A stretch of DNA of 64,000 bases from Eutreptiella sp. 'Long Island Sound 2002' (Eukaryota; Protista; Euglenida): contig OZ038378.1 of NCBI GenBank assembly GCA_964036045.1, positions 3,348,001-3,412,000 on the forward strand. Direction: 5' to 3'. The position numbers were made by a program, and so were the translations under genes. Shown piece by piece: positions 14,984 through 64,000 of this stretch. Under the pieces are notes generated by a model. The model was given only the letters and a program-made list of their open reading frames with translations, was not told the DNA's origin and made no database searches. Each line of letters begins with the position of its first letter. Positions within the stretch are counted from its first letter, which is position 1.

Positions 14984-14991
14984 TTAGGGTT

Positions 14992-16568: not shown

Positions 16569-17525
16569 GTGTGTCGCTGTGTGGGGGGTTTGCCTCACGG
16601 GGCAGGCACAACGCGAACCGTTGTGGCTGGTCTCCGTCCGCGCCCGCTTTCAGTTGGGGTGCGCCCGTTTTTGTCCGGGTTTTGGGGCCGTCCGTGAGTG
16701 GCGTCCGTTTTAAGTTTCGGGCCCCCCTTCTGTACCCGTCCGTCGGCGGGCGCCAGCGTTAGGGATGGGTACAATCTGATGCACGGCCGGACTGGAAGGG
16801 CATGTGCCGGTGTGACACCGCACGCCACTGTGGAACGGATATGTGCACCGTCCGATCTGACGCAAAAGGCGCCGACACGATAGCCCAAGAGTTTCACTGA
16901 GCAGCTCAGCCGGATAGACCCGCTGTCCTGTACGCACACCCTCCCCCTGTCGTATCCCAGGCCCCTACCGCCCGCCCACCCCCCTTGTCAACGCTACGCG
17001 ACAGTGATTCGCGTGGTTGGCTGCACAGAATGCAGGCGACGGGCTCGCTGTGTTCGTACCTGATGTACTCGGGGTGGTTCCCGGGGGTTGACGCCCATCG
17101 CTGTGGCATGGCCGCGCTGCACTACCCGCAGGCACCGTAATGCATGACTCGTTTTGCAACCACTTTGTAGTGTCATCAGAAACCCCTTGTTTTCGTGCAA
17201 TAATTGGGTCAGGTGGGTGCCGGACGGTCCAGCAGGTCAAGGCTTTACCGACTTACCGAAACCATTGGACTGTGGGCACCCAGCACGTCCACGAGCTACA
17301 CTCTGCCTCCAAGTGTGGGCAGTTTATGGGCATCGAGTAACCAAGGAACCAAGGAATGACCTTTTTGCCACAGTGTGTTGCAACACGTTCTGCAGTGCGC
17401 GCGCGGTATTGCCCTGCCCGTTTGTGTGCGCTGCATGCCGTGCCCCAGGCCGGGCAAGGGTATGCAGGCCGATTTTGGGTTACCCCCCCCCATCTGTATA
17501 AGCCACGCCCTTGTCCAAGCTACAG

Positions 17526-25322: not shown

Positions 25323-25900
25323 TTATGGCATTTTTTGCAACATCTCATATGTCCTAAGAAGTAATGCAAATCGTTCGGTGGCATGAACGTTCGTTTGATC
25401 TTTGTCCGGGTGAAGCTTTACTGATAGGTGAAGATATTGCTTGCGGATGTTAGCTTTGTTTGTAGCCCCAAGCAATTGCATGCCAACTTCAAAATTGTTC
25501 TTGTCCAAATATTCATACATTGCCGGATATGAAGCAATGGGGAGATCAAGTGATACATGCTCTTCATCGTCATTGGTGAAAAGTTTGGGTTGATGACCAG
25601 TTGACTCCTCTTGGTGAATAGCATGCCTCTTTTTTCTCGGGGGTAATGCATATTCTTCATCATCACTAGTGATGGCCTGTGGTCGAATGTTGGTTGTTTG
25701 CTTTTCGTTGAGACCTTTGTGTGACGATTGCTCCTTGCCTTTCTCATGTTTGTCAAGTTGATTGAAACTTTTTGAAGCAACACACGAAGAACAACGCTTT
25801 TTGGTACCAAGTTTCCATTGGCTCTTTGTAAAGTCTGCACGCAACCGCTGGATACCACAAGAGAAGCATTGTAGTGCATCTTGCAATGAACGTTTGGTGG
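25323..25900 (-). CDS. Helitron polyprotein part D: Stc1-like finger + C-terminal J (DnaJ) domain
   Basis: CFSCGIQRLRADFTKSQWKLGTKKRCSSC, then IRKQYLHLSVKLHPDKDQ...ATERFALLLRTYEML with an intact HPD (25404-25412). It joins part C by a frameshift in the long T run at about 25906-25917. Confidence 0.75.
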
Positions 25901-32032: not shown

Positions 32033-32140
32033 GGTGGTTCCTGTTCGAATGCAAAAAGAATCAATGCTGTCTTGCAGTGTCTCACTATCAACTGGCTCAT
32101 CACCAGTGGTGTTAGTTGGTTTGTCCCCACCCTGGCTTCT

Positions 32141-35100: not shown

Positions 35101-35227
35101 CTGTCTTATTGGATTCCAAGTCACTGCTCACAGAATCAACAAAAAGTGGGATTGTGCCAAGGAATTGGAGACTGGATGCCGCAAAGCAGCTGTTGTTCAT
35201 CCAAACTAGTCCATAATGCGCTGTCAT
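32141..35227 (-). CDS. Helitron polyprotein part A: USP/peptidase C19 domain, low-complexity linker, C2H2 finger, Cys cluster, DUF6570-like region
   Basis: Cys box GLVWMNNSCFAASSLQFL, QQDVHEFL, His box IILHRGSSTLSGHYVC...WYACDD, C2H2 CAFRGC...LIEHVTGHH, then FALANEMWIG...GNVTCF...VRRAVVVHLI. It is in the same frame as part B and separated from it by one TAA (32141-32143). Confidence 0.8.
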   Translation of the reverse strand: MTAHYGLVWMNNSCFAASSLQFLGTIPLFVDSVSSDLESNKTDSQIRLAVEHLLIALMECGNGELPPKSPYTFGNNDDCHQQLRIHVAHAAEYLVHFHPTHNRQQDVHEFLGLLFAWIWNLVLPLQSADVRTEAEASTLEFPFVPQAMSKVGSQVLHSISCSNCQYGNLQVCIDISSWTVGVSNTQGLQGAMQSLFATESNVGNCTACSGMACLKRRKQLITASQYIMIHLSLFTFNAATQQPSKLQCFYGCPSHFTIEDCSVGSPNKVLHLQLMSIILHRGSSTLSGHYVCLTQRKGLWYACDDEGVTLVEAPNQWLLNNDDFTPYMYMFKTTIQDLNNAHPSDKGMSALEQMSNKDCESVHDCTFSATEHMSNMFSDNCTGQESRHGDDESMHDCAMSAAEHVSDESNDTCNDQDDTCSSKSHCTKTTSNDSNESGDTQMSVPNTRPGSPANADQTSDFQFTTMLATLPSPLSPSPLAKVECFIGVLSAELSPFPTIPWAFQNCLDELKSNGIVLPQKHCAFRGCTWQGDDEASLIEHVTGHHKASFAHVDELSHACITMQDAYHLYQEAIAHIERQRMPLVGFAIDRRIAVSFARRYRDENIMSLVCSICAQIHSVDFECHGRPPIQWHSPLDSNNGGSFFGMCKEDTERLLGLTTYFNAYGTKDSGMRQQVQTKWCLNVPFTDGIIQVLCCPEDRRCVACPRNACGIHDMNCPLCPKCELPICASCSDELSRPRPKMLPFALANEMWIGYINEYIYEHQVTYIELLCASPVNTAMLSLTLQRFNDRVSGSSLAHLSNTRLGAKGNVTCFSLPWEEVLQTFSQNGGRNHLPRLGEDLAGLVQVVVESHTQDDTQLVVQHGRVRRAVVVHLIACMIERNHPAYVGINMVDVEQRSTLLPVDGIPPEIIRVIVPHKNGPDLHDGKAALPHEHGRSIDGNIFLSHVNGVQLDRYSNSAVDINEQRIHRIQSVEEALKFPTAKDDMSSDEDEVESISSSPPNLSSHISAMSGQEYEMQSVDSTKTHVST

Positions 35228-36030: not shown

Positions 36031-36271
36031 TATCCGGCCTACCAGGTTAACCTTCATAATTTTGCACCGGTCCCTAATGAGAACACTTTGATGGTGTAGT
36101 TAACAAAATAAAAAAGGCCTCATGGCACGCAACCTAGTGAAATATGCATATCCATAATATGCCACAAAAAAGAGTGTTCTTATTAGGGATGACAGAGGGT
36201 TAGCTCGAATGGTGGTGCGAGCTTCGCAATGTGGATCTCAGGACATTGCCATATAGCCACAAGTGTTCACA

Positions 36272-39200
36272 CCAAGCTGGTTCACACAACGGAGATCCAA
36301 GCTGGTTCAGAAAACGAAGATCCAAGCTGGTTCACACAAAGGAGATCCAAGCCGGTTCACACAACGGAGATCCAAACTGGTTCACACAATGGAGATCCAA
36401 GCTGGTTCACACAACGGAGATCCAAGCCGGTTCACACAATGGAGATCCAAGCTGGTTCACACAATGGAGATCCAAGCTGGTTCACACAATGGAGATCCAA
36501 GCTGGTTCACACCATGGAGATCCAAGCCGGTTCACACAATGGAGATCGAAGCTGGTTCACACAATGGAGATCCAAGCCGGTTCACACAATGGAGATCCAA
36601 GCTGGTTCACACAACGGAGATCCAAGCTGGTTCACACCATGGAGATCCAAGCTGGTTAACACAATGGAGGTCCAAGCTGGTTCACACAACGGAGATCCAA
36701 GCTGGTTCACACAATGGAGATCCAAGCCGGTTCACACAACGGAGATCCAAGCTGGTTCACACAACGGAGATCCAAGCTGGTTCACACCATGGAGATCCAA
36801 GCCGGTTAACACAATGGAGATCCAAGCTGGTTCACACAACGGAGATCCAAGCCGGTTCACACAACGGAGATCCAAGCTGGTTCACACAATGGAGATCCAA
36901 GCCGGTTCACACAATGGAGATCCAAGCTGATTCACACAACGGAGATCCAAGCCGGTTCACACAACGGAGATCCAAGCTGGTTCACACAAAGGAGATCCAA
37001 GGCGGTTCACACAACGGAGATCCAAGCTGGTTCACACAATGGAGATCCAAGCCGGTTCACACAACGGAGATCCAAGCTGATTCACACAACGGAGATCCAA
37101 GCTGGTTCACACAACGGAGATCCAAGCTGGTTCACACAAAGGAGATCCAAGCCGGTTCACACAACGGAGATCCAAACTGGTTCACACAATGGAGATCCAA
37201 GCTGGTTCACACAACGGAGATCCAAGCTGGTTCACACAATGGAGATCCAAGCCGGTTCACACAACGGAGATCCAAGCTGGTTCACACAACGGAGATCCAA
37301 GCCGGTTCACACCATGGAGATCCAAGCTGGTTCGCACAAAGGAGATCCCAGCCGGTTCACACAACGGAGATCCAAACTGGTTCACACAATGGAGATCCAA
37401 GCTGGTTCACACAACGGAGATCCAAGCTGGTTCACACAATGGAGATCCAAGCCGGTTCACACAATGGAGATCGAAGCTAGTTCACACAACGGAGATCCAA
37501 GCTGGTTCACACAATGGAGATCCAAGCTGGTTCACACAACGGAGATCCAAGCTGGTTCACACAATGGAGATCCAAGCCGGTTCACACAATGGAGATCCAA
37601 GCTGGTTCACACAACGGAGATCCAAGCTGGTTCACACAATGGAGATCCAAGCCGGTTCACACAATGGAGATCCAAGCTGGTTCACACAACGGAGATCCAA
37701 GCTGGTTCACACAACGGAGATCCAAGCCGGTTCACACAATGGAGATCCAAGCCGGTTCACACAATGGAGATCCAAGCCGGTTCACACAATGGAGATCCAA
37801 GCTGGTTCACACAACGGAGATCCAAGCTGGTTCACACAACGGAGATCCAAGCTGGTTCACACAATGGAGATCCAAGCCGGTTCACACAACGGAGATCCAA
37901 GCTGATTCACACAACGGAGATCCAAACTGGTTCACACAATGGAGATCCAAGCTAGTTCACACAACGGAGATCCAAGCTGGTTCACACAATGGAGATCCAA
38001 GCCGGTTCACACAATGGAGATCCAAGCTGGTTCACACAATGGAGATCGAAGCTGGTTCACACAACGGAGATCCAACCTGGTTCACACAATGGAGATCCAA
38101 GCTGGTTCACACAACGGAGATCCAAGCTGGTTCACACAATGGAGATCCACGCCGGTTCACACAATGGAGATCCAAGCTGGTTCACACAACGGAGATCCAA
38201 GCTGGTTCACACAATGGAGATCCAAGCTGGTTCACACCATGGAGATCCAAGCTGGTTCACACAATGGAGATCCAAGCCGGTTCACACAATGGAGATCCAA
38301 GCCGGTTCACACAATGGAGATCCAAGCTGGTTCACACAACGGAGATCCAAGCTGGTTCACACAATGGAGATCCAAGCCGGTTAACACAATGGAGATCCAA
38401 GCTGGTTCACACAAAGGAGATCCAAGCCGGTTCACACAACGGAGATCCAAGCTGATTCACACAACGGAGATCCAAGCCGGTTCACACAACGGAGATCCAA
38501 GCTGGTTCACACAACGGAGATCCAAGCTGGTTCACAAAACGGAGATCCAAGCTGGTTCACACCATGGAGATCCAAGCCGGTTCACAAAACGGAGATCCAA
38601 GCTGGTTCACACAATGGAGATCCAAGCCGGTTCACACAACGGAGATCCAAGCTGGTTCACACAATGGAGATCCAAGCCGGTTCACACAATGGAGATCCAA
38701 GCCGGTTCACACAATGGAGATCCAAGCTGGTTCACACAACGGAGATCCAAGCTGGTTCACACCATGGAGATCCAAGCCGGTTCACACAATAGAGATCCAA
38801 GCTGGTTCACACAATGGACATCCAAGCTGGTTCACACAACGGAGATCCAAGCTGGTTCACACAATGGAGATCCAAGCCGGTTCACACAATGGAGATCCAA
38901 GCCGGTTCACACAATGGAGATCCAAGCTGGTTCACACAACGGAGATCCAAGCCGGTTCACACCATGGAGATCCAAGCCGGTTCACACAATGGAGATCCAA
39001 GCTGGTTCACACCATGGAGATCCAAGCTGGTTCACAAAACGGAGATCCAAGCTGGTTCACACCATGGAGATCCAAGCCGGTTCACACAATGGAGATCGAA
39101 GCTGGTTCACACAACGGAGATCCAAGCTGGTTCACACAACGGAGATCCAAGCTGGTTCACACAATGGAGATCCAAGCTGGTTCACACAACGGAGATCCAA

Positions 39201-39700
39201 GCTGGTTCACACAACGGAGATCCAAGCTGGTTCACACAACGGAGATCCAAGCTGGTTCACACAATGGAGATCCAAACCGGTTCACACAACGGAGATCCAA
39301 GCTGGTTCACACAACGGAGATCCAAGCCGGTTCACAAAACGGAGATCCAAGCTGGTTCACACAATTGAGATCCAAGCCGGTTCACACAATGGAGATCCAA
39401 GCTGGTTCACACAACGGAGATCCAAGCCGGTTCACACAACGGAGATCCAAGCTGGTTCACACAACGGAGATCCAAGCTGGTTCACACAACGGAGATCCAA
39501 GCCGGTTCACACAACGGAGATCCAAGCTGGTTCACACAATGGAGATCCAAACCGGTTCACACAACGGAGATCCAAGCTGGTTCACACAACGGAGATCCAA
39601 GCTGGTTCCCACAACGGAGATCCAAACTAGTTCCCGAAACGCATTACGCAATGGAGATCCAAGGCGGTTCACACAACGGAGATCCAAGCCGGTTCCCACA
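36272..39700. repeat. Homogeneous 25-bp satellite (GGAGATCCAAGCYGGTTCACACAAY), roughly 135 copies
   Basis: Continuous 25-bp periodicity with no unique spacers. The long ORFs here are artefacts. Confidence 0.97.
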
Positions 39701-40084
39701 ATGCGTAAATGCCCCCGGTGGGTGACCTAAGACCCCACCCACCCCTATATGAAGAGAGGTGCCCGGCCATTGCCTGGAGGGGCCACAAAGTATGGAAGAC
39801 GACGGCAAACACGAAAGAAGGGAGTAGTGGGAATGGAGATGCAAGCTTGTTTATACAATCGGGATCCAAGCAGGTTCCCACAACCGAGATCCAAGCCGGT
39901 TCCCACAACGGAGATCCAAACTAGTTCCCGAAACGCATTACGCAATGGAGATCCAAGGCGGTTCACACCACGGAGATCCAAGCCGGTTCCCACAATGCGT
40001 AAATGCCCCCGGTGGGTGACCTAAGACCCCACCCACCCCTATATGAAGAGAGGTGCCCGGCCATTGCCTGGAGGGGCCACAAAG
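39604..40084. repeat. 187-bp block duplicated at 294-bp spacing, forming the right end of the satellite
   Basis: 39604-39790 and 39898-40084 are near-identical (satellite-derived units + unique GC-rich tail). Confidence 0.85.
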
Positions 40085-40311: not shown

Positions 40312-43039
40312 ATGCTTGACATACAGGGGGTGTACTGCACACGGCCGCAAGACATCGCGACCGCATTTAAGGAATTCTGGGAGCAAGTCATGAAAAAACC
40401 AGACCAGTCGGTAGAACAGTGCAGAGAGTGGATGGAAGGTCTGGGGATACCGCGCAGGGTGCGACAGGCATTGCCCAAGCTGACAAAGAAAGTGTCCGGG
40501 GACACGGTGCAGGCTGCGCTCGAGCGCATGAAGAAGGGATCGTCGCCGGGATTAGACGGGATCCCGGTTGAGGTCTACTCAGCAATGGCAGAGGTGTTCA
40601 TCCCTCCTATGACTATAGCGATCAACAGCTGTCTTCAACAGCGTCAGGCGCCAGCACAATGGCTGGTGAGCTTGCAGCGAAATATACCAAAGGGTCGGGC
40701 AGCGGACACAGTTGGCGAGATGCGACCTATTGCATTACAGACGGTGATTTGGAAATGGATGGCAACAACCATCCTAGTCCTCATAGAGGACGCGTTACAG
40801 GTAGCAGTGCCACCAGCCCAAAAGGGGTTTTTGAAAAATAGACAAATGCTCCAGCACATAATAAACGCCAAGGGCCTGTGGCACTCGGAGACAGAGGGCA
40901 CATTTCTGTCAGTGGACTTCGCCAAAGCTTATGATTCAGTATCACACAGCTTCTTTGCAGCAGGCATGCAGTTCTTGGGAATGCCGACTGAGATCACAGA
41001 GCTTCTGGTACATTCACTGTCAGGACAAGTGCAGTTCTGTGTGGACAATGGTGTGGTTCCTGGCATATCCATGCAACCGGAGTCTGGGATTCGCCAAGGC
41101 GACCCACTATCCCCGCCAATCTTTGCGTTACTAACAATCTTCCTGGTGTACCAGTTCCGGAAACGGTGTCCGGAAGCACAGCTAATGCTGTATGCAGATG
41201 ACTTATTAATATGGATACCTGGGGGGGATGAGGAAGCTCTGAATCAGGCAGAACGAGCTATGAATCTGCTCAATGAATTCGGGAAGTTCTCGGGACTACA
41301 TGTCAATCCGTCCAAGTCTTTTGCGGTACTCAAACGGGTGTGCGGTCCGTTGCCAGAGCGCTATGTTGGGTTGGAAGTGCGGGAAAGAGTCAAGTACCTG
41401 GGTGTTTTAATCGGACAGGTGAATGCGGAGCAGGCCTATGCTGGCCCAATGGCTAAAATGAAGTCCAGGGCGACTTTTCTGAAAACATTACCATTGGATC
41501 TGTGGGAACGTGCGGAAATCTACAAGGTGTGGGTGCAGCCTGTGGTGCAGTTAACAGCACGAGTGTATGAACCATCACAGAAGGTATTGACGACTCTCAA
41601 TGTTATATTCAAAATTGCCTTGGGGATATCCACGTGGGACCTCAGTCCAGCGATGTTGGCGCTGCCGTACAACCAGGGTGGAGTGTGGACGTACCCACTG
41701 GCTGTCTGGGTGCGATTTCAGTATGGGCGCTTGTTCCAATCTGTTCTAAAGGATAAAGTGTGCTTCTCAGGCCAATGGGTAGCGAATTTCGAACAGTGGG
41801 CGGAGTCAATTGGGCTGTCCCTGAGGCCGTCCTTCTTGCCATATCTGCAGCTAGCTGTGGTAAAAATGAGCGCACGAACGTGGCTGCAAGCATCAGTGCT
41901 CATGTTTTCGCGGTTGCGCCAGCGGGCGGCAGCTCCGCCCTTGGTGGGAATACCCAGCAACATGCCGCTGTGGCACAACGTGCTCTTCAGAAACAAGTTG
42001 GGGCATACCTATTATTCTCCGAGTCTCGTGCGCAAGGGGATTAGCACTTTGGCACAAATTGTGGAGGGAGGAGAGTTGCAGGCGGCGGTGAAACTACCCC
42101 CGACATGGACGCCGGTGTATCAGACAAAAATACCACAAGTGCTAGCTTTACCGGTGCAGGATTTGCCTAAAGAGTGGACGCAACCAAATCAGAAAATGCT
42201 AGCAGTGCTTTGTCCGCTGGAGCCGCCACAAAAACGGCAGGAGCCAGAGGTGTGGGAACAGTTGGCACAACTCAAGCTACCGGGGGCGCAACGAGATTTC
42301 ATGCGAAGGGCGCTGTGGAAAAAGCTAGCGGTGGGGGCGCGCACGCAGCACGCCTATCATCAACCCAACTGCATCTTATGCTCTGTACCCGAAACTATCA
42401 AACATGTGCTTACAGCGTGCAAATTCTGGCCAGTGGCCGTGGATATTGTGCGTAAAGCCTTTGGCCCGGTATGGGGCCGGGACGGGGCCATGTGCCCCAT
42501 GGATACGTTGCTTGTGGCTCAGCCACTGCTATCGCTGAGCACCACGCAGGGACTGGCGCTATGGGCTGCGGCTAGAGCGTCCTGGGTCCTGCGATGTGAT
42601 GCAAAATTTAGATCGCTGTCGGTGGCAATGCCTGACTTTGTAGTAGCCTGGATGACACTTGTAGAGGTGTGGGCGTCGGCACCACAGTCATCATTTGTGA
42701 GGCAAGAGGCCAAACATCTGTGCAACTGTCTTAGGAAATTCTTGGATGGAGATCAGCCATTTCCCTCCATGCAGCCACAGGGGGCAATTGTCAGAGGACG
42801 GGGGGCACAAGTGCCAAAAAAGGCAAAATGGGCATCGGTTTTGCCGAGCCTGCTGCAGAAAATTGACGCTAAAGCACAGCAAGGATGGGATGTGGCTTTT
42901 GTTGATGGGTCCAAGCAGGAGACAGGTGGTGTGCATCATGCAGGCTATGGTGTGTGGTTTGGGGACAATGACGAACGCAATGAGGAGCTGCCGCTATTGA
43001 ATACAGAGCGGCAATCTATAACTCGGGCTGAGCTGAGAG
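40312..43039 (+). mobile_element. L1/Tx1-like non-LTR retrotransposon ORF2 (RT, zf-RVT, RNase H); endonuclease missing at the 5' end, 3' end lost in the gap
   Basis: SSPGLDGIP, MRPIAL, SVDFAKAYDSV, GIRQGDPLSP, YADD (41191-41202), GLHVNPSKS, KYLGV; CILCSVPETIKHVLTAC; AFVDGS...AGYGVWFG...RQSITRAEL. The frame is open for ~909 codons. Confidence 0.93.
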
Positions 43040-43239
43040 NNNNNNNNNNNNNNNNNNNNNNNNNNNNNNNNNNNNNNNNNNNNNNNNNNNNNNNNNNNNN
43101 NNNNNNNNNNNNNNNNNNNNNNNNNNNNNNNNNNNNNNNNNNNNNNNNNNNNNNNNNNNNNNNNNNNNNNNNNNNNNNNNNNNNNNNNNNNNNNNNNNNN
43201 NNNNNNNNNNNNNNNNNNNNNNNNNNNNNNNNNNNNNNN
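43040..43239. other. Assembly gap (200 N)
   Basis: Run of n. Confidence 1.
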
Positions 43240-45315
43240 CCCCCACCCCCCCCCCTAAAAAGTGGGTTTCAAGTGGGGGGGGTCTGGGGGGGTCCGGACC
43301 AAAAAACTCATTGGGGGATGCGTTTATTGGACAAAATAATGATTTTACAAGGGGTTAAACTAACAATTCAACCCCTTGGGGTAGGGTACGCGAATAGGCC
43401 CAAATGGGGGGGTATGTGGCGTTTTCCCCATATATACGCCCACCTGGCTTTGATCTAACAACCTCTGCGAGGTGATTTTACAAGGCGCCGAACCCGCCGA
43501 AGCTGATTTACACTGTGATACTATGTTGCAGTTTGGTGGTGCTATCCCCCCCCCAGGGGGGGGAACTGTCACGACACTGGTGGGGAGATTACAGGGGGGG
43601 GGGGGTAAGGTACATGCAAAACCCATTCTGTGGGTGACGGTTGGTGAAGTCGGTGTTGGGGGGGGGGGGGGCGCAGCTGATCCCGTTCACCCTCCCGAAG
43701 AGAAAGGATAGACGACCTTGACCTTTGCGGGGGGGGGGGGGGGATGACAAAGTGAGTACACAGGTGTGGTTTGTGCACGAGAACTGCAGCCGTCCGGACG
43801 TGTAGTCAGAGCTTGCTTTGGGGGCTGGCCTCAAACCTTGTGCGACCATGCAGGGCATGGCCCACAGTGAGGGAGTACGTAGCAATCCTAATGGTGCCGC
43901 AATGCATACATGGGCATGTGCCCTGTATTTCACATGCACCAGCGCCCATGCAATGGCAGAGGGGTGGTAGTAGGGAGCCGCCCGCTGCGGCACATTTATC
44001 AAGTCCTGCAGGACAGGCATGCGAGTGTCCCTTGGGGCTCCCTGCAGACCAACTGAGCAGCGACGGAGGTTTTGTGGTTGGAGGCCTTCCTCCGCAACGG
44101 TGGAGTCAAAGATCAGAATCATATCCCATGTCCGCTCCACGCCATGGCACGAAGCCATATGAAGAACGGCAGCGCTTGCCCCCGAGGACGGAGGCACATC
44201 TGCGTCTTTCCCCACTTTTGAGATCATCAACCTCACCGCTCTCTTCTTTCTCCTCTCTCTTCTTGGAGCAAGAGCTGAGCGGCCCCCCTCCAGTGTACTT
44301 GCGTGTCCAAGTTGGCTTAACTCCCCCTCGCCCCCTGTACCCACCAATTACAGCCCCCCCCCCCCCCCCCGCGCGCCTCTCACTGCTGCATTTACTTATT
44401 ACCAAATTGGTGGCATGTCCCTCTCCTCAGTTTCTGCCGATAGCAAAATCTGTGACCGCAGACGCGCTCAGTGTCGCAAAATGCTTTTTAGAGAGGAAAG
44501 TTGAGGTCTAGCGAATCCAGTTGAGGCGTGTGGCGTTCAGTAGGTGTGTATACCCGTGCCCTGTCATGGGCTCGCCCCTTAGGTGGGCGCCCACACAGGG
44601 GTCTGAGCATGGGCGTTGGCATGGGGCATTGGCAAGGATCTGAGCATGGGTGCATGTCTTTGTGTCATCCTGGGCAAGAGGATGGGCAAAGCTGTGTGTC
44701 AGCGCCGACCACACACTTTTGCTGCGGTGCGAACAGAGCCGAGCGGTATGATAGGGGACCCTACGGTTTGGTTTCGGATGCGCCTGGGCATCACAAGGCG
44801 TGACACAGATGCACTTGGGCGGAGGCTTCATACCCCTGGACCCAAGGATAGTCTCACCAGGCTGAAGGACCGGATCCAGGGATCTAGGTCTTTTGGTGAC
44901 CATTGCTGCTGGACTCAGTATGGCCGGCGGTCCTGCATGAGTACTGACGCCGCTCCCGCTGACCATCCTCTGTTGTGCTGGTGCGGGTGTTGGTACTGGG
45001 GCTCGCCAAGAGGGGTGGGGCAGGGGATTGAACCCGTCTTTTGCCCTGCAACGAACCCCTGGCGCACCAACATCCTGAACCCCAATAGCCCAATGCGCTC
45101 CTTAACATGGTGTTACCACCATCGTGTGCACACGCACACACGCCAACACACACAAACCGGCCAAAGGGGGGGCGCAGGCGCCTCCTTTCACTTTTACCCA
45201 GTGATCGGGGATGGGTGTATACCACAACGCCCGTACACAGGCACGCGCAAGCACACGCACGCAACCAAGGTGATGCCATCAGCGCCGCAGGCAGCACAAC
45301 TAGCACAACCACACT

Positions 45316-51635: not shown

Positions 51636-51676
<41 letters not shown>
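51636..51676. repeat. (AG)n microsatellite
   Basis: Direct reading. Confidence 0.9.
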
Positions 51677-51677
<1 letters not shown>

Positions 51678-52725
51678 AACGGTCGGTCCCAATTGACTGA
51701 CTGCCCCCGCCTTGGGCACTTTCAGCCGTAAGTCCAATGATGTGCTTCCATCTCAATAGAGCTATGGACAGTCTCCTGAGCATGGACACGGAACACACCC
51801 TGCCATGCCCCTGTGCTCGATGTCTGTCTCGACGCATTCCACTGGCAATAGTAGAAGGCGTATCATACAAATGGAAGTCTGCACTGCCGGGATTTGTCAG
51901 CAAGTCACTTTAGAGGGATCAGACCTTGGCTCGCACGGCCCTACAGCAGTGGTTTCGTGACCAAGAGCTGTCTTGCAAGGGGGCGTACAAGAGCAAGGGT
52001 TGCAGGGATAAGCTGTTCGAAGAGCAACAATCCTGGCGGGCGTAAGGGGGAACGTTAGTGCACCAGGACACGGTGGCCATTTTTTTAGGCCAAAATGCCC
52101 CAGACCAGCGCTCTCCCAAGCGCTATCCAAGGCTTCCCCATCCCCATGGACCCCCAGAAGGCACAGGTTACATGGCCAGTTTGATTCCTCCGCACTCTGG
52201 GGACTCAGAGAAGGCAGGGCTTATGTACTCAGAAACAGTTTTGGACCAGGGGAATATGTTCCCGCTCATGTCTTGGAAGACCATTGATGCAAGCAGCTCA
52301 ACTGCCATGCAAGATGATGGAGGGAATGAGGTTGAGGTTCGCATTGTGTTGCCAGGCACACCGCCATGCTTTGCGGTGCAGAAAGTGTTGCATGCAGCAC
52401 ATTGACCCACACACTTGTGGGGCAAAGCGGTTTGGGTTTGATTCTGGTCTGCTTTTTTGTTGGGGGGGTTCTAGGGGAGGATAAAGCTGGGGCTGAAGCC
52501 AGGATGGTGGGCTCTCTCGGCTCTGGTGATTCAGTTTGCAAGCACTGAGGACAGTGGCGTGCCTTTCCAATTCGTGCATGAACCCAATCACTCAGTGGAG
52601 TTCCCATAGCAGCCGTGATGGTGATGAAAGCCGCTCCTTGTTCCTGTTCCCCCCACAGCGATCATTTTCAGGCCAAAAGGGGCTAACGCGAATTTGGCCA
52701 CAGCTGCCTCTCGCTCCCTCCCTCG

Positions 52726-52825
<100 letters not shown>

Positions 52826-53689
52826 GCTTGCCCTTGCTCTGTCAAGCCCTGGGTCAAGAGTGGGATAAGTCCGGTAACCTCAGCTTGATGCAAAAGATGG
52901 GTCTTCCGGACACCAAGTGACGATGGTGACACTCATCAACAAAATTGGGATCACTGTATGTGCCAACGCAAGGGGGTGCTCACGGCCCCACTTGCCATTT
53001 GGACCACATTGTCCTGTATGCACAACAGCGTAATGCACGTGCCCCTTGCTGCCTTGACGACAGGCTGTCTGCCCACGTGGATGGGATGCGCTTGAACTCT
53101 GCCGCTCTCCAGCACGTTGGCTTTGTCGCGTGCACCAACTCGTAACAAGACGCAGGGGCTACCACCATTTATAGTAATTGGAAGGGAAGACTACGGGCTT
53201 TATGAGTAATTGCAGGGGGGAAAGTATGGCCTTTGGCAGCATTTGGGTGGGGAAACCACGGCGTTTCGTGGCAACCAGGGGCCAAGAAGCAACGAATACT
53301 TAGCTCTAGAAAGCCTCCATGTTAGAAGTTTTCGGTCACCGCTTCATGGCAACTGAGGGGGGGGGGGGGGGGCTGCTTCAGTCCGCCTTCAAGACCACCA
53401 AACCCTGCCCTCCAAGCCCCGGTTTGCCGCATGGGCGGCGTGCCATCTCTCCCAACACCGCCAACCATTTGTCCCAATGGGGAAATTTGGTTCGGGGCCG
53501 AGAGGCAACAACTCGTGAGCAACGGCACAACGTAGTGCAATGCTGGTGACAATGAGTAGAGGGGAATGCCCCCAAAAACCTAGTGCTCCGTCCGTGGGCA
53601 GGCACACTGGTACTTTGACCGGGACGAGTGGGGCTGCACGTGGGGGCGTGGCACTAGATGAACCAAAGAATGGCACCTTCCCATTTCCG

Positions 53690-55394: not shown

Positions 55395-56900
55395 AGCAAG
55401 TGCCGTATGATCCTTGATGCCACCCCAATAAACGAGGCTAACGCCGCCGACCGGAAAAATTTCAACTCCCGGGGTGGAAGGGGTTGGGATGAGGGGAGAG
55501 GGGCAAGCACGTGACAACCCAAGGTGGCAAAATTAGACTCGCAAAACGCCTTTTGGAGCAACCGGCTGCCGCGCAAGTGGCGCAAAATCTTTGTTCTGCA
55601 GACCTCAGACGGACGCAAATATCGCTATACGTGCATACCCTTCGGGTGGCGCTACTCGCCCCTCATATGCCAGACCTTGGTCAAACGCATCATCGAGGGA
55701 GCCCCACAGGGACTGCATGCGCAAGCCTGGGTGTACATAGACGACATTCTGGTGTTGGCGTTGCGGCGCTCCGAGCTACGGGAGGCGGTCCAGGCCATCT
55801 CCCGTAGGCTCACAGCATCAGGCTTCCTACTCAACAGCAAAAGTGAGCCGGAGCCCGTGCAAGACATCCCATTCATAGGCAAGCAAATCAATACGGTGCG
55901 GGGGTCGTTTGCCAATGCTGGGGGGGTGCTGAAAAGTGCGGTGTGTAAGTGGGTCGGCGCACTGTGGCAGCGCACCATCAGCACACACGGACTTTGCAAC
56001 CTGCTGGGACAACTCTGCTTGTTGTCTAGACTGTGCGCGGGGCTGGTCTGTTTCATGGCGGACAGCTCCAGGGAGTCAAGGTCAACACGGTTCACAAGGG
56101 GCATGGCACGTGGGCTAGGAATCATCCCGCTCTTTAGCTCGGTGGCGCAAAAGTACCCGGCAAAAGGTCCTAAGGTGGTTCCACCCACACAGGCCAGGCC
56201 ACGACACCTGCGGCTTTTCACTGGCGCGATGGGGGAGGGTGCAGAGTTCAGGGTAGGCATGGGGGGGAACACCGCCTATACAGGTTACTCCGCTACCCCG
56301 CGTGGATCAAGTCGCTACAGCAGGCAGAGCTGTACGGGGTATACTACGCCTGCAAACTGGCAGCTCACAGGGGGCGGAGGGAGGTGTTGGTAGGTACAGA
56401 CAGTGAGGGTAGCTGCTTGCAAACCATGCAGATGAGGGCACTGGCGAGACTCCCCCCCCCCCCCAATAGCTATTACTCAGACGAATGTGCTGGCTCTGAT
56501 TGTGGAGCGGTATAAGCAATGGAACATTCAGGGTATGGTGAGATGGCAATGCAGGAGGACCCCTGAGCAGGCTGAAATCCTACCCATCAATCGGCGTGGC
56601 ACGGCCATCTCTGAAGCCAAAGAGCGCCGTCGACGATGGGTGGGCAGAGCACAAAGGAAGGGGATTAGCAGAGCTCCACTTTGTAAACAGCTTGACCGCC
56701 CGTGATGTGCTTTTGCATCTGGACTTCATGCATCATGCAACCTTTTGAGGTGCACCGGCTGGGGCGAAGCGGGAGTCGACAAGTGCTTCGTCGAGGGACA
56801 TGGGAATATACCCTCCATTGAATCAATCATTGACAGGTTTTTCAACGGCCTGCAGCCCCTCCAGCCGACGTCCACGAAGCGGGTCAAGATGTTGAAAACC
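55395..56900 (+). pseudogene. Degraded DIRS-type reverse transcriptase + RNase H of the same YR retroelement
   Basis: KCRMILDATPINEA, KLDSQNAFWS, YRYTCIPFGWRYSP, YIDD (55734-55745), FIGKQI, then RNase H remnants RLFTGA, QQAELYGVYYA and VGTDS, with frameshifts. Confidence 0.8.
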
Positions 56901-59105
56901 TAGCTTATCCCCATTCTGTGTTATGGTCTCCTTGTGCACCGGTTCCCATCAACAGGCTACAATTCTGTATCCGAGAATTTCAAAAAACATTATTGGAAGT
57001 CGGTTGCGCAAAGTGGGAAAGTGCCTTACCCATACATCAAACTCACATAAACATACCCCCCTCACCCCTTGCGCAAGCACGCTGAAAGTCAGGAAAACGA
57101 CGGTCACATGGGGTTGCCGTGTTTAGACAAGACAGTGCCCACAAGAGGAAACTTAAAGAAGAAATCAGGAAAACAACGGTCAGACGGCGTGGTTAGACAA
57201 GCCCGTGCTTGTGCAAGGGGAAGGGGGGGTTCTGGTGAGGACAAGGGGGCAATGGGTTTGCAAGGTTTTCTCGTGTGTGTGCATTCAATTATGGTCAAAG
57301 ATTCCTTGAAGGTGGCATATGTTCCAATCCATTGCCCTTGGCGTTACAACCTCTATTGGACCGCAAATTAACTGTGTGCAATAGGCGTCTGTAGAATCGG
57401 CTGTTTCCTTCAAATGCAAATTCATGGTCTCGGGCCCGGGAACCTTGTCCACCGTTTGACTCGGTTTGTGGCTCCAGTGTTTATGTTTAGGGGGACAAAA
57501 ACGCGGTAATTCATCTCGGGAATGACACGAAGTCCCTTCTTCGTGCCACCAGTGATTTTCCTTACTTGATAATTAGTCGGTTGTCGACACGATTGCAGAC
57601 ATGGCTCATAGGACCCACGGTTCTGCTACCGATAGTGTCAATGGCAAATGGGTGATTGATTTTCGGTCACTATTTGCACAAGGCTAGCTAAAATCAGTAC
57701 ATGTTGGATCAAGGCACACGTGGGCTTTGTGGGCAACCACTGTGTGGAGTCATCTGTTAAATCTTGTTCGTTTGCCTCCCTTGTGTTGCCGAAGCAGGTT
57801 GCTGCCCCTCGTGGGGTTTGTGTTGCTCTTAATGGTACACCCTTTGGAGGCAAAATGGGTGAGCCACACAAATTCTCTCCTTCACTCGCCATGATCACAC
57901 TACATTGCATGAGGGGTGTTCATTCAACTGGGCTAAAAGCTTCACCTTTTTGTCCAGTCTTGTGTTCAAACAGTCGGCTCGCCCAAAAACTATGAACGGC
58001 TACAAAAACAGTGGGGCCCTCTGCCCTGATGCGTGCCCGAGGTGCCTAAAAGGTCACCACATGTGTATCATTGTGACCTTTGCAGCCCCCTCAATGCTTT
58101 CCGTGCCTTGCTGGTCTCAGCCACCTTATGGGGTTGTTGTTCAAAAATGGCTACATGGTGACCGCAGCCTGCGAGACTTACACCATTTTGCTTGTACTTA
58201 CCCCTCCTACCCCTTGTAAAAGCTATGCAAAAGTCCCAAATTAATCCGGTCCCTATGCCTTCGGGTGCTCGGATAAGGCCGTAGATGCCAAGGTCCAAAA
58301 AGAGAAGATTGCATGGTGAGCTAGTGCAGGAAAGGGCAATATCATGCACAAATATCCCCAAAATCAGAGCTACGTATGTTCAAATGGGCAAACACTCACA
58401 ACAAACGCTCACGAGGGGGGCCGTCTCCTCGGTTCGGGTACGCGACTCCCCCCCCCCCCTAGGGGCTTTCGGCCCACTTCTACTGGGGGGGGGGGAGTCG
58501 CGTCTAAAAGCGAGGAGACGGCCCACCCGTGCAAACGCTACGCCCGGGGGAGTAGTCGGCATGGACACGCCTCCTCTAGGTCAGCTGATATGCCGTTGGC
58601 CACCCCACAATTGCCTAGGGCACAGGCCCGGCTAAGCCTTGCACTCAATTGGGCCCACCCGCACTCCTTGATTGCATTGGCATAGGTGGTGCTGCTTAAG
58701 GCTGGGTGGTGCCCCACGGTGGATTGGCTGCGCGGTTGGAGGGGCCCCGGGGCTCGCTAAGTCTTAGCCCACGCAAACTGCACCCCCTTTTGGAAGAGGA
58801 AGACCCAAAGAACGACAGCCCGAAAAACTATTCCTTTTGGACATTTGCAGCACACATGACCCAGACACCACCAAAAAAATACAATTCCACCCAATTTGCT
58901 GCTTTTTTCCAGTTTTTGTTCATTAAAATAAACTATTATTTTGTCTGATTTGAAGGGTGTGTTTTACCAATCTTGTCGTTTTTGTATTTCAAAAACCAAC
59001 TAGTGCGTGCCTTTTCAGGAGCTCATTTTCTAAAATGACATTCTGCGGGTCTCCAGTTGCACCTATGTTTGTCCCGCAAAATAAATTGCTTTTTTATGTC
59101 CCTGA

Positions 59106-62100
59106 GTGCGCGAGGCCTCGCGCACTCAAGGTCACGGAAACAATTGTGTACGGAAGACAACAAAAACAGGACACGAAGTGCACAACGTACAAGCACTGAA
59201 ATAAAAGCTTGGCAAAAATGTACAAGCCCTTAAGGGCATATAATTGCATTCGCGTCGAAGGCGAGTGCGCGAGGCCTCGCGCACACATGACTGCAAAAAG
59301 AGGCAAAACACTTGGGTTAATGGTGACTTACTTCTTCTTCGGTCCTGCAACCTTAGACAACCTGGAACCCAGGTTTCTTGCCACCGCACTTGTCCCACTT
59401 GGGGAGGCAACGGTACCACGAGACGGCTGGGCACCAGAACGCGAGGGCGGCTTGAACTCTGCACTAGCACTCGCAGCAGTCTTCGCTTTCTTCTTCGGCG
59501 GGTCCTTACCCGAATCGGGACTTGCATCGAAGTGAGCGGCGGGTGCCCGCTTGCGCTTCAGCTGGGTCTCCAGTACTTGCTCCGGATCCTCTTCTTCTTC
59601 CTCCTCGTCGGCATCATCGTCGTCTGATTCTCCGGGCTTGTCCGATTCCTTCTCTTTTCCTTTCGCCTGCTTCTTGCTACCCGAGGGGGTTCCTTTTCCG
59701 GCCGCAGTTCCCTGAGTTGGTACGGCTTTGGCAGTCTTCTTCACCTTGGCTTGGCTTGGCAAGGTAGGTGCAGGCGCAACAGGCTCAGTGTCGTCAGCGG
59801 GGGCCTCAGTCACGACCTGTTCCTGGACGGCTTGTGCGGCATGCACCTTCTGGTGCCCTTCATACCCTCGGTTGCTGTCCAAAACCCACAGTGGAATGCC
59901 ACGCAAAAGCCACTCTTCTTGAGTATCCCAAGTTGCAGCTGTTGCTCCCTGCTCCGTCTGATCGGCCTCCAACATGTACCGCATGATGATCGCATGCTGC
60001 AGAGCACCTCTAACGGCATTCGCAAGGTCCTTTTGCTCGATCGCTGACACGGCCAGAAACGCCACTTTAGTCCTCCCCGACTCGTCGGACATCGCAATCT
60101 TTGCGGCCATGGCAGGCGTGTCATCCACAACAACCACTGCATCAGCATGCCCACTGTCCAAAAGATATTCGTCGAGGTACCACAGCACGTGAATCACAGG
60201 CATGAAACCACCGAGGTTCTTGTTCTGCATCTCTTCGAAATGTCCAGCGGAATACGTCACATAGTTCGGCAACTGTAAATGCGATGAATAAAGACGAATA
60301 ACGGAGGCAGCAGTGCGCGAGGCCTCGCGCACACAACGGCATCGAAACTGGCGAAAGAAGCAGATATACCTGCTTATCCCAGCGACTCGTTGTTCCGATC
60401 CACATACAATGCTCGTCAAACCGATACATGTTGCTGGTCACGGGACCCGATAACCAAGAGTATACCGGCAACCGGGCATGGTAGAAAGGCGCTGTGGTTG
60501 GATCCTTGTCCTTCTCCATATGCCACAGCCTCTGCATGTCGCGGCCAATACGGTGCACAACATCAGCCTCGCCATAGAAAATGACGTCCTTCCCCAGCAT
60601 CATCACATCGAACAGCCACTTCGGAACAAATCCTGCAGAGTCATATTCCACGAAAAGGTCAGCGTTGATGACCCACAACGGGTACTGCAAATCCCGGAAA
60701 CAGGCTAGTGGTGTCTCTTCGATATCCTCAATACGGCATGCCGTCAAAGCGAATTTGCTCCCTTGTTCGTCCTGCTTGGAGACATTGATCACGTCGCCAG
60801 TACTCAACTGTGTCTGTGGCGGTGCCGATGATGGTGCCTCAGTCTTCCTTTGCAGTTGTTTCCGCACGGCCAGCGTCTGCGGTGATGGAGGTGCGCCCTT
60901 GTCCCCAGTCCGCCACAGAGGTGCACCGGTCAACGTCTTCCACTTTGGCCACGGCGACCGGTACCTCGTACTTTTTGCGTCTTCCCAATAACCCCAATTT
61001 CCCAGGCCAATCTTCAGTTGCGTCGTGCCCAGCGCTGCGACTTCTGCTCGGATCTTCGCATCGGCAGCTGTACAGATGTGAAAAAGGTGGTTGAGTGCGC
61101 GAGCCCTCGCGCACTGAAGCTGCGAAACTGACGCATACCTGCGGTCTGGTTGACATACTGCTTACTGTCCGGATGGTCAAGATGGAAAATAACCCATTGT
61201 TCCGTAATCAGCGCGTCAATATAGTTCTGGGTGGTGCGTAAGGTCGAGTCCTTCAGGTTCATGTGCGCACAGACTTTCTGCAATAAACTTGGTAGATGCA
61301 GCCCTTCCAGCTTCTTGGCATTCCTTGTAACGTCCTCTTTCTTGCTCTTAGTCTCGAGGTTCTTCATACCAGTAACCGCCTCACGGCCGCAGTGATACGC
61401 CAGGGAGAAGATGTCCCTCCAGTTCTTGAATGTCGAGTCCTGCGAGGGAAAACAGTGTCATGGAGTGTGCGAGGCCTCGCGCACTGTAACCGTGCGATAC
61501 ACGACTACATACTGTGTGTCCTGGTTCCTCCAAAGCCTCGGGTGCAAGAAACGCAGAGTTGACGGCAGCCTGGACAACAGCAGTCTTGAACCGTTCGAAA
61601 TCTTGTGGCTCTTTTTCCGGCTTCTGGTCCTCAATGTACAACAACATGTTGTCCAGCGCCTCGGACAGCGGAATCCACGTCACAGATTGGCTACCAGCTT
61701 GTTGCAATCCTGCAACCTTGGCCCGGATCCTCCAAGGCGTTTCGTACTTGAGAATGTCAACATAGCAAAACTCCTGCCACTCCTCCAATTCTTTGCCTTC
61801 TGCGAGCCGCATTTGCTGTATCGCTCTGCATGTTTCTGTCCCATGTTGACCATTCAGAACGTAAAGCGAGCCATCTGCAACGCAAATCATGTACCACAGC
61901 CAAGAGAAGAAATGTCTTTGATCGAGCGCGAAGCGAGTCATACCACTATCCTCCCATGCCGTTACGCGCAACGGTCCAGGTGGTGGCAGTGCTTGGTATC
62001 CCGCCACTTTCTTGGCAACGTCGTCGTAGTTGATGGATCAGATCTGTCCTCGCTCCTTGGTCTTGTCAATCTGCAAATCAGTAATCTTTACCTTCACTGC

Positions 62101-62520
62101 TTTACCATTCTCCTTCCGCAGCCACTGTTGAACGTCGATTGTGAGCTTCATCTCCGGTATTGGCTTCTTCTCACCCTTCTTCTTGCGTCCTTTCTTCGGC
62201 GTTTCCCCTTGGTCGGTCCCTGGTGACGACTCCATGGCCTCTACGTCTGTTGCTGAACGTTCTGGCGACCCTGGTTGACTCATGATGCCAAGAAATGCCT
62301 GAAAAGGGCAAATGGCATGACATGAAACACGGTCATTTGAACTCCGAAATCAGTCGAAACGGTATTTTGCAGGTCGTTTTCGCAAATCTGTTGCACAACC
62401 GTCTTTGCTGTGACCAATTCCACCGGACTTAGCGACCTACTCAGTGCGCGAGGCCTCGCGCACTCACATCGCATTACGGACCTGTTTTTCGTATCGTTTA
62501 GTGCGCGAGGCCTCGCGCAC
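59106..62520. repeat. Seven dispersed copies of the 20-bp palindrome GTGCGCGAGGCCTCGCGCAC
   Basis: Copies at 59106-59125, 59265-59284, 60313-60332, 61095-61114 (1 mismatch), 61465-61484 (1 mismatch), 62444-62463 and 62501-62520. Five extend to 22 bp (A...T) and the first to 26 bp. Confidence 0.97.
59328..62283 (-). CDS. Five-exon gene (62283-61944, 61874-61513, 61439-61139, 61067-60370, 60272-59328; 882 codons) encoding an N-terminal ParB/Srx-like domain, a central domain weakly resembling an inactive N6/N4-MTase fold, and a Lys/acidic tail; one in-frame TGA at 62038-62040
   Basis: Four GT-AG introns (69, 73, 71 and 97 nt) exactly reconcile the frame shifts between the listed ORFs, and the exons sum to 2,646 nt. 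RGQI[*]SINYDDVAKKV...PPPGPLRVTAWEDSDGSLYVLNGQH resembles ParB-like Q.R...Y.I.DG.H patterns. Domain calls are by eye. Confidence 0.75.
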
Positions 62521-62532
62521 TGCGGGTGTCAG

Positions 62533-64000
62533 TTACCGCAAGCGTTGCCGCACGTTGCGTGTTGCTGCTTCCTGTCTGTCGGCATCCATATCTGTTCTCC
62601 GCCCCACAACAGCATCCAGTTTCCGTTTCAGTTGGTTGGTGGGATTTGTTTTCTGGTCAATGAGGGCATCCAGTACGTTGTGACCAAGTAGCCGGTAGTG
62701 GTCGTAACCAAGGGGTTGTGTTGGTGAGGGTGGAAATCTCGGTAACCTCCGCGGCCACGAAGTTGCAACGGTGCTGACTCGGTCGGACTCCCATTCCACA
62801 TAGGCCATGCAAATCCGGCAAAAATCTTGTCAGTCGTTGTCGCATCCTGTGTACCAGGTTGTGGGGAACGTTTTGCACACCCACGCGCTTGCCACCAGGA
62901 CCAACTTTTAGTAACAAGTAATGGTTTTCCACCTCCTCAACAGTAAAAGAACCGGTGTTTTTCGCCTTGTCCCGCACGAGCTTGCTCAACATCCCTTCTC
63001 CAAACTCCTCTGAGTGTGCCTGACCGGGCAGGTCCTGGTGCCACTTGCTGTTGTACAGCAATGTGCACATGATTGTGCGTTCATACTTCAGTACGGTGTC
63101 ACACGGTCCTCGACGCAGCCTCCGCAACAGACACAAACTCAACTGCAACACCTCCTGAGCTCGTGACCCTGTACCGTTGTTTTCCCCCGACCAGTTGCAT
63201 TCCCGTACTAGGTGACCCAAGTACAACAACAATGGGCACCATTCCAACAACAAATGCAAGACTGCGTTTGCCACAGCTGCCCTGTTGGCATGCGCCGTGT
63301 CACGACCACTGATTGCAGTTGCAGCTTGTGCCTTGCGACGATACGGGCGTAGTATTCTGGGTGTGGCAAGCATCAGCGCAGCAATAGTTTTTTCCATAAC
63401 TATTAGTTTGGGGTATGATAGTATGGTTGAACCAGGGCGTAGCAGACCTTTCCGTAGGTAGTTTAGAATAGGCCAGAACACCCGAAAAGTGTGAGTAACA
63501 ACAAACTTGTAGGCATGCCAAACACCGTAAACTACAGGTACATAACGCAGGTAAGCACGCATGTTCCATCGTTGGTTCTTGGCACCGTACAAAAACTTTA
63601 GTATCCTGTAGTGTATGTTTTCGTCAACCAACAGCGGTAGAACTCTGTTTGTCTGTTGTGCTGTGTCCTTTGCAAAGTGCAACAAGTTTAACAGACCAAC
63701 ACCACCAGTTACCTTTTCTTTTGACAGGGCAAACGGGCGCCACACCGGTGCCTGCACAGTCCTTGCATCCCTCCTCACATCCAACGGTGCTCTCACGTTT
63801 CCGGTGTCTGGTACACAACCATCCGCATACCCCATGTCACGCAGAGTCTGGGGGATTCTCCGTTCACGCTGTTGCACAGCCCTTGCAACTGTCGTTATCC
63901 GTGCTGCCAGGTCCTCAATGGCTGGATGTCCTCAGTACATGGGCCTCTGTTTCAGTTGAAGTACTGCCATTGCGGTACAGTTTTGCGACCGGTCACTTTC
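62533..64000 (-). pseudogene. Probable DDE-type transposase, 5' end outside the window; one upstream in-frame stop and a frameshift near 62815
   Basis: PLLVDENIHY (putative D), YGVWHAYK 36 aa later (position and form of the xxH motif of CMC/hAT/MULE/P/Kolobok-group transposases), SEEFGEGMLSKL (putative E). The C-terminus continues in ORF 62533-62808. Confidence 0.5.

Follow-up and report, generated by a model that had tools for sequence, protein, structure and literature searches.

Dispersed palindromes and a predicted ParB-like protein in a two-gene DNA transposon from Eutreptiella sp. 'Long Island Sound 2002'

Only a handful of transposons are understood as to how they recognise their own copies and how they evade silencing. 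Chief among these cases is that of VANC, a protein encoded by the VANDAL (Mutator-like) elements of Arabidopsis. The motifs of VANC are short and non-palindromic. VANC has an anti-silencing activity, and its family-specific, fast-evolving motifs are found in the non-coding regions of the elements, often as tandem repeats (Hosaka et al. 2017, PMC5735166). Here, a 64-kb stretch of DNA from the euglenid Eutreptiella sp. 'Long Island Sound 2002' (GenBank assembly GCA_964036045.1, contig OZ038378.1, positions 3,348,001 to 3,412,000; hereafter the window) is analysed, in which an autonomous cut-and-paste DNA transposon carries, on the same strand, a DDE-type transposase gene and a second open reading frame (ORF), ORF2, together with a palindrome dispersed through its non-coding DNA. 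The palindromes probably represent a family-specific operator array to which one of the element's own proteins binds, most likely the ORF2 product. As in the case of VANC, an element-encoded accessory protein is accompanied by short motifs that have accumulated in the element's own non-coding DNA and that differ between related families; anti-silencing is shown for VANC, while it is conjectured for ORF2. We know of no reported fold relationship between ORF2 and VANC.

A comparable arrangement is present in giant transposable elements of red algae. In Plavaka/EnSpm, MuDR and other elements, the gene PAG3 encodes a protein that is ParB-like by HHpred only, with 7BNR as the best match, and that also has a putative 2-oxoglutarate (2OG) oxygenase part, while InterPro found nothing; inverted-repeat arrays adjoin the gene, and the study in question (Petroll et al. 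2025, doi 10.1101/2025.02.11.637652) suggested that PAG3 binds to the element that carries it. The original prediction, made from the letters of the window, knew of no such arrangement in eukaryotic transposons; in view of the 2025 red-algal case, the arrangement is not entirely without precedent. In an Ectocarpus Sola1 element, one gene joins a ParB-like domain to a DNA methyltransferase domain (PMC12477816), and a 2025 survey of the ParB fold, which says nothing of transposons, gives sulfiredoxin as its main representative in eukaryotes. ORF2 resembles PAG3 in being a gene of a eukaryotic DNA transposon whose N-terminus is ParB-like by remote homology only, with inverted repeats nearby, and Myxococcus ParB (7BNR), the best HHpred match of PAG3, is also among the Foldseek matches of ORF2. 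The PAG3 hosts measure 10-50 kb, belong to named superfamilies, have 2- or 9-bp target site duplications (TSDs) and carry several accessory genes, whereas the ORF2 element measures 6.9 kb and has two genes, a 5-bp TSD and an unclassified transposase. In addition, the PAG3 repeats are tandem arrays by the gene, whereas the palindromes of the ORF2 element are single and dispersed through all the non-coding segments, including introns. Unlike PAG3 (compared by description) and the Sola1 gene, ORF2 has no 2OG-oxygenase or methyltransferase part that can be detected by Pfam or by profile search of the PDB. What is novel with respect to the known systems is thus a compact two-gene element with an unclassified transposase, dispersed intronic palindromes and no detectable enzymatic fusion, along with direct comparative evidence for motif constraint and for what appears to be a family-specific code.

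Two bacterial systems also share with ORF2 a ParB-fold protein of a mobile element and palindromic sites, to which ORF2 is predicted to bind. Plasmid RK2 carries about a dozen OB sites across the plasmid, and its protein KorB has IncC (ParA-type) and KorA as partners. Unlike the KorB system, the element has no IncC- or KorA-type genes. KorB of RK2 represses at a distance from the palindromic operator OB (PMC11790492), and VirB, which acts through virS in Shigella, is a ParB-fold anti-silencer that also acts at a distance (PMC10770331). KorB and VirB differ from ORF2 in being bacterial proteins with CTP-binding arginines that work as sliding clamps dependent on cytidine triphosphate (CTP), while ORF2 has G-Q-H-x in the place of GERR. 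A second protein that binds reiterated motifs near both ends is found in PIF/Harbinger elements (a Myb-like protein) and in CACTA elements (TnpA). The ORF2 element similarly combines a transposase, a second gene whose product is predicted to bind DNA, and reiterated motifs; however, the motifs of Harbinger and CACTA are limited to the subterminal few hundred bp whereas half of those of the element are internal, and protein folds and TSD lengths differ.

Anatomy of the element and distribution of its palindromes

The copy of the transposon present in the window extends from 58763 to 64000 on the minus strand and matches a full copy (L001) by blastn with 91.6% identity over window 64000-58763, being cut by the window end so that about 1.6 kb of its 5' part lie outside. 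At the element end downstream of ORF2, the terminal inverted repeat (TIR) CTTAGCCCACGCAAACTGCACCC (58763-58785) is identical to the TIRs of the full copies; L001, L002 and L004 each have a perfect 23-bp TIR of this sequence, beginning with CTTAG, at either end. The transposase gene is represented by its 3' three-quarters (62657-64000, minus strand; stop codon 62657-62659). A protein search with one ORF2 exon returned about 200 related ORFs with 62-93% identity, nearly all on megabase contigs of a single metagenome assembly of the European Nucleotide Archive (ERZ25074135), and the flanking DNA was then fetched. Full elements of the family of the window copy (family A) are about 6860 bp long. 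All of the 12 complete copies that were checked as one set have a 5-bp TSD, and so do L001 and L002. Seven full copies share at least 99.85% identity with L004 and one exon-1 protein is found again on 77 contigs, indicating that family A has been active very recently in that genome. Three further family-A copies (L003, L005 and L007) have internal deletions, but their TIRs are intact and 5-bp TSDs flank them; they keep the first or all three of the 5' palindromes and most of the internal ones.

In the 64 kb scanned, the 20-mer GTGCGCGAGGCCTCGCGCAC is present in seven copies between 59106 and 62520, five perfect and two with one mismatch, while no further match with up to three mismatches is found elsewhere and 100 dinucleotide-preserving shuffles gave no match (0 expected by chance). 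Since the base before the 20-mer is A in all seven copies and the base after it is T in five of them, the full unit is the 22-bp palindrome AGTGCGCGAGGCCTCGCGCACT, which is rich in CpG and contains nested restriction-type palindromes. Two perfect copies (62444-62463 and 62501-62520) are located in the intergenic spacer, between the transposase stop codon and the ORF2 start codon. One copy is then found in each of ORF2 introns 2 (61465-61484), 3 (61095-61114) and 4 (60313-60332; perfect, at the intron centre), in all three cases within 3 nt of the centre of the intron. Two other perfect copies follow the ORF2 stop codon, one 44 nt past it (59265-59284) and one in the 3' subterminal region (59106-59125), and they are homologous to sites 11000 and 11159 of L004, respectively. 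None of the seven copies is inside an exon. The mismatch of the intron-3 copy is central (G to C, GAGCCCTC centre) and is fixed at that site in the family-A copies in which the site remains recognisable, while the mismatch of the intron-2 copy (GTGTGCG, a CpG to TpG change) is private to the window element. On inspection, no similarity is found among the sequences that flank the copies, no flanking duplications are visible, and the introns of ORF2 share nothing beyond the palindrome. Thus, the number of copies, their placement and their unrelated flanks are all as described in the original prediction, which had also pointed to lesions in both neighbouring ORFs; these are in-frame TGA codons at 62038-62040 in ORF2 and at 63932-63934 in the transposase gene.

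The gene model of ORF2 (minus strand), like that of the transposase, was derived from sequence logic and intact ORFs. Translation starts in exon 1 (61944-62283; ATG at 62283), which bears the TGA lesion at a codon that encodes R in intact copies. Exon 2 (61513-61874) encodes the domain assigned to the ParB fold, with its GQH motif and helical part, and is followed by exon 3 (61139-61439), exon 4 (60370-61067) and exon 5 (59328-60272; stop codon 59328-59330), the latter encoding an acidic, lysine-rich tail. The four introns all have GT..AG ends and measure 69 nt (intron 1, 61875-61943), 73 nt (intron 2, 61440-61512), 71 nt (intron 3, 61068-61138) and 97 nt (intron 4, 60273-60369). Intron 1 is in frame, and it was accepted because relatives do not have the corresponding 23 residues, its ends are GT..AG and the AlphaFold confidence is low in that part. 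This four-intron model reproduces the 881-amino-acid (aa) spliced protein previously proposed, and the same splicing in the related copy L004 gives an uninterrupted ORF.

Full elements have ten palindromes at fixed offsets along their 6860 bp: three are upstream of the transposase gene (198, 423 and 609), two between the genes (3103 and 3159), three in ORF2 introns (4138, 4511 and 5293) and two after ORF2 (6338 and 6497). Every non-coding class is therefore occupied, namely both subterminal regions, the gene spacer and the introns, and the presence of 10/10 palindromes in the non-coding ~33% of the element has, by our calculation, a chance of about 1e-5. Half of the sites (those at 3103, 3159, 4138, 4511 and 5293) are internal and the other five are not more than about 610 bp from an end. 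When the window and loci L001-L016 are taken together, corresponding to about 336 kb of the source genome, the 16-bp core is present in 146 copies in 113 kb of element DNA and in none in ~223 kb of non-element DNA, so that, with positions fixed in every full element, the motif is restricted to the element family. In metagenome contigs of the Joint Genome Institute (JGI), the 22-mer has no match, while the 20-mer has 31 single isolated matches on unrelated contigs that are uninformative on the element.

These distributions bear directly on the origin of the palindromes, as a short, perfect and multicopy palindrome with unrelated flanks could also be the footprint or the insertion of a micro-MITE (miniature inverted-repeat transposable element), or an introner-like unit, that landed by chance. 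However, the same positions in every family-A copy indicate that the sites are inherited and not newly inserted, there are no visible flanking duplications, and the metagenome matches of the 20-mer are isolated. The chance that the palindromes have a micro-MITE or footprint origin is thus so remote that fixed site positions, together with the lack of copies in the ~223 kb outside the element, can be taken to rule it out. Introners were also ruled out, as the introns share the palindrome only and their positions are conserved across families, and a derivation of the palindrome from the TIR was discarded upon inspection, there being no similarity between the two.

The constraint acting on the palindromes was evaluated by comparing the window copy, L001 and L002 each with L004. 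The divergence between these subfamilies amounts to 1.4-1.9% in the palindromes, 0% in the TIRs and 7-10% in the other non-coding DNA, with a synonymous divergence (dS) of 0.09-0.18. The palindromes are thus about 5x more conserved than the neighbouring non-coding DNA (Fisher test against other non-coding DNA, p = 0.0017, 6e-6 and 4e-4 in the three comparisons), and this constraint holds despite their CpG richness. The ratio of non-synonymous to synonymous divergence (dN/dS) is 0.15-0.26 for the transposase and 0.33-0.45 for ORF2, indicating purifying selection on both. Therefore, the subfamilies have diverged under selection and the palindromes are among their most constrained sites.

Related families and their motifs

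A search with the protein of gene 1, the transposase, revealed relatives with 30-46% identity in the same genome and in other samples. Beside family A, six further families (B-G) can be distinguished; in a local profile search families A-F were found to encode both proteins on the same strand, while family G was identified by the transposase-like protein only. The families for which both ends are on hand (A, B and C) have TIRs of 23-30 bp that start with CTTAG and 5-bp TSDs. Each family has its own motif. The 22-bp unit of family A (window and L001-L014) is present ten times per full element, and counts that include near-matches give 10 copies of TTGCGCGAGGCCTCGCGCAA in family B (L015), about 13 of CTGGCCGAAATTTCGGCCAG in family C (L016), 7 of ACACCGCGAGGCCTCGCGGTGT in family D (L017), 24 of ATGCGCA-CT-TGCGCAT in family E (L021), 28 of TTGCGTA-TT-TACGCAA in family F (L022) and 9 of GACGCGATTGCGA, of which only the core is partly symmetric, in family G (L054). 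Palindromes of 16-22 bp cluster in and around the gene, and the similarity of the motifs tracks the relatedness of the transposases: A and B have a common 16-bp core, D has the inner 14 bp in common, and the others differ. In families A, B and C the TIRs stay alike while the palindromes change. The pairing of ORF2 introns with palindromes is kept in families A, B and D, in which intron positions are conserved; in families E and F, the gap between two ORF segments of the transposase, which is probably an intron, holds three copies of the motif.

Some individual copies deserve a separate description. Intron 3 of the family-B ORF2 (L015 11357-11437) is devoid of the B palindrome and holds AGTGCGC-CGCACT, corresponding to the outer arms of the A-type motif minus its centre, and looks like a relic of an older A-type site from which, judging from its sequence, the centre may have been deleted. 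In L010, a family-B element (11520-16903) adjoins a family-A element in reverse orientation, so that both types of site are present within 12 kb.

Families A, B and C, with their three motifs, live in one genome, a circumstance that is relevant to the possibility that the motif is the site of a host factor (a transcription factor, an insulator or a methylation-related protein) or a structural cruciform exploited by the element. A CpG-rich motif with nested restriction-type palindromes would suit a factor of this kind, and conservation implies function without naming the binder. On the other hand, a shared factor would favour one motif over three, the change of motif tracks the divergence of the element's own proteins, and no copy is present in ~223 kb of host DNA, so that a host factor or cruciform is regarded as improbable. 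A private protein-site code would appear, from the sequences alone, to differ among at least six families, three of which share a genome.

In family E (17 to 7) and in family F (23 plus to 5 minus), the asymmetric 2-bp centre of the motif occurs either way round, as expected of a dyad-symmetric DNA site. The orientation of the centre relative to the gene strand is biased in both families, and local duplication may be its origin; five copies of family F (L022) carry the same arm variant TTGCGTATTTTCGCAA. The bias of family F would also agree with the motif acting as an RNA hairpin in introns and untranslated regions, where it might direct splicing or export, be bound by an RNA-binding protein or give rise to small RNAs. 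In particular, every motif is able to fold (6-9 bp, -6.2 to -14.8 kcal/mol), which counts against a reading based on DNA recognition, and the sites are confined to introns and gene-adjacent, possibly transcribed regions. However, it is the sequence itself that is identical from site to site, with no compensatory variants among the copies listed, and both orientations occur in E and F. Three sites, at 200-610 bp from the left end, precede the transposase ORF by more than 500 bp, and others are near the right end; in addition, the stems are too short for Dicer-type processing. All in all, a role as an RNA hairpin has a low probability, and a DNA site for an element-encoded protein is still preferred.

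The ORF2 protein, the transposase and the proposed mode of action

An AlphaFold2 model of ORF2 residues 1-257, built on an alignment of 48 sequences, has a predicted local distance difference test (pLDDT) value of 79.5. When this model was compared with the PDB by Foldseek, all but one of the top 47 matches were represented by ParB/Srx-superfamily or uncharacterised chains, and the matches include ParB, Noc, KorB, PadC, sulfiredoxin, SerK and SbnI. ParB bound to cytidine diphosphate (ParB-CDP, 6sdk) is matched with a Foldseek probability of 0.99-1.0. The alignments to C-terminally truncated ParB, Noc and KorB extend over 185-218 columns (about 190-200 for Noc and KorB), nearly the whole chains. 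Where a longer alignment takes in most of a ParB-type chain, the best template modelling (TM) scores and root-mean-square deviations are those of KorB chains. A ParB/KorB/Noc fold is thus supported as the predicted structure of the ~200 N-terminal residues of ORF2, in keeping with the ParB-like gene originally proposed. In canonical ParB clamps a helix-turn-helix DNA-binding domain directly follows the N-terminal one; residues 146-252 of ORF2 are helical in the model. A separate GQxR motif is found upstream of GQH in the ORF2 family.

Several observations weigh against this assignment and against ORF2 as the partner of the palindromes, in addition to the folding of the motifs mentioned above. 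The Foldseek E-values are modest (from 1.8e-3) and the TM-scores are 0.27-0.42. No match to ParBc (PF02195) or to any other Pfam family was obtained with ORF2, with its pieces, which were run for five families, or with 48 distant relatives collected by exhaustive HMMER search, and a profile search of PDB sequences with ORF2 found no ParB and nothing else. By our reading of the motif, (L/V)xGQH followed by a variable residue is present where ParB has the CTP-binding motif GERRxR, and there are no conserved arginines. Residues 258-881, corresponding to two-thirds of the protein, are assigned no fold by Pfam or by PDB profile search. One of the four ORF2 introns of family A, intron 1, has no palindrome. 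Finally, the transposase changes with the motif too and has a helical N-terminal region with a conserved arginine-rich motif, and could thus be the binder.

As for the remaining part of ORF2, one alignment of the middle region across four families shows neither a His nor an Asp that is conserved. A Kelch-like reading of the 'DGSLYVLNGQHG' stretch, based on one weak PDB match, was dropped after the structure search. ORF2 residues ~104-154 are matched many times over in two other proteins, by 15 separate stretches of P0307 (1798 aa) and by 7 of P0369 (905 aa); the two could be repeat proteins or fragment arrays.

A ParB fold raises the question of whether a working nucleotide-switch clamp of the ParB type has been kept, in which case the parS-like palindromes would be loading sites from which ORF2 spreads or slides along the entire 6.9-kb element. 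This appears rather unlikely. In particular, CTP-switch behaviour is doubtful because the GERR arginines are replaced by G-Q-H-x. As to a ParA partner, profile searches gave only two genes in families A-F, and no ATPase domain was found in the pieces scanned. If it were true, a clamp could form a private chromatin domain that counters host silencing, or tether or condense the DNA during excision, and a fast co-evolution of protein and site would provide each family in a genome with its own recognition code.

The transposase has no match in Pfam or in sequence and profile searches of PDB chains. Its AlphaFold2 model (21-sequence alignment) has a pLDDT of 85.9, and the best structural matches are the P element (6pe2, probability 0.98), Hermes (hAT) and HzTransib, with TM-scores of only 0.2-0.4. 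Among its acidic residues, D288 is invariant while D149, E493, E494 and E497 are at least 90% conserved, making D149, D288 and E493/494/497 the putative residues of the catalytic triad. On the basis of the model and of these residues, gene 1 is accepted as a transposase with a predicted DDE core that has an alpha-helical insertion and with an unclassified superfamily. Indeed, no Pfam or PDB-sequence match ties it to a named superfamily (P, hAT or Transib). A TSD of 5 bp is the same as that of Transib and, among P, hAT and Transib, agrees with Transib only, while to our knowledge the CTTAG termini fit no terminal motif of the three. The transposase, with its 5-bp TSD and CTTAG termini, may thus represent an unclassified superfamily.

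The first ~140 residues of the transposase are helical and contain a conserved R-x-N-x-R-T-R motif, which brings up the alternative that the palindromes are the binding sites of this N-terminal region, working as subterminal or internal enhancers for the assembly of the complex, as in CACTA with TnpA, in Ac and in P, and that ORF2 has a separate role. The five sites within about 610 bp of an end would fit, as would the retention of terminal sites in deletion derivatives and the fact that the transposase-like protein changes with the motif as ORF2 does. However, half of the sites are in the spacer and introns, at positions kept in A, B and D, an unusual arrangement for end-acting sites. Similar TIRs with changing palindromes in A, B and C would rather fit a conserved contact between transposase and TIR alongside a separate, faster pair, and it is ORF2 that has a DNA-binding type of fold. 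Binding by the transposase is thus considered unlikely. ORF2 is preferred as the partner of the palindromes because the TIRs of A, B and C are conserved while the palindromes change, because of its DNA-binding type of fold and because it evolves faster than the transposase, as expected of the part that sets specificity.

According to the preferred reading, an ORF2 dimer would recognise the palindromes and thereby mark the elements of its own family from one end to the other. The most likely outcome would be that the element controls its own expression or chromatin state over its full extent, comparable to VANC, KorB and VirB, and the next most likely one that the transposase is assisted in locating its own family or in assembling on it. 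An element-wide role is favoured over pure end-synapsis because half of the sites are internal and the intron positions are conserved. If ORF2 does act in this way, the ParB fold, which in eukaryotes is represented almost only by sulfiredoxin, would extend to sequence-specific DNA recognition in eukaryotic mobile elements, and orthogonal pairs of protein and palindrome could serve as targeting tools. With two genes, one short palindrome and near-identical, apparently intact natural copies, the system is also tractable.

Other features of the window

The window consists mostly of transposon DNA, beside which one candidate host gene is seen, an ORF that combines NHL repeats with a BTB/POZ domain (8223-9716, plus strand). 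A Helitron-like block (25753-35227, minus strand) includes a 1294-aa ORF with Helitron_like_N and PIF1 helicase domains; next to it are a 1028-aa ORF with UCH (ubiquitin C-terminal hydrolase) and DUF6570 and an 803-aa ORF with no Pfam match. Retroelements are represented by a 1048-aa reverse transcriptase ORF with zf-RVT (40312-43458, plus strand) and by remains at 55524-56393 and 17375-18256 (both plus strand), namely a further piece of a reverse transcriptase and an ORF for RNase H. Rfam found nothing over the whole window.

Repeats are also present. A tandem satellite with a 25-bp period and at least about 134 units (36147-39730) is A-rich on the plus strand and gives rise to spurious long ORFs, and (GA)n and (CT)n microsatellites (51636-51682 and 52720-52830) lie in inverted arrangement about 1 kb apart. 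About 240 bp outside the end of the ORF2 element, at 58421-58523, a long imperfect inverted repeat is built around a core in which about 12 C are paired with a run of about 12 G, in the form GCCGTCTCCTCG...ACGCGACTC-Cn / Gn-GAGTCGCGT...CGAGGAGACGGC, and looks like a foldback element or a MITE.

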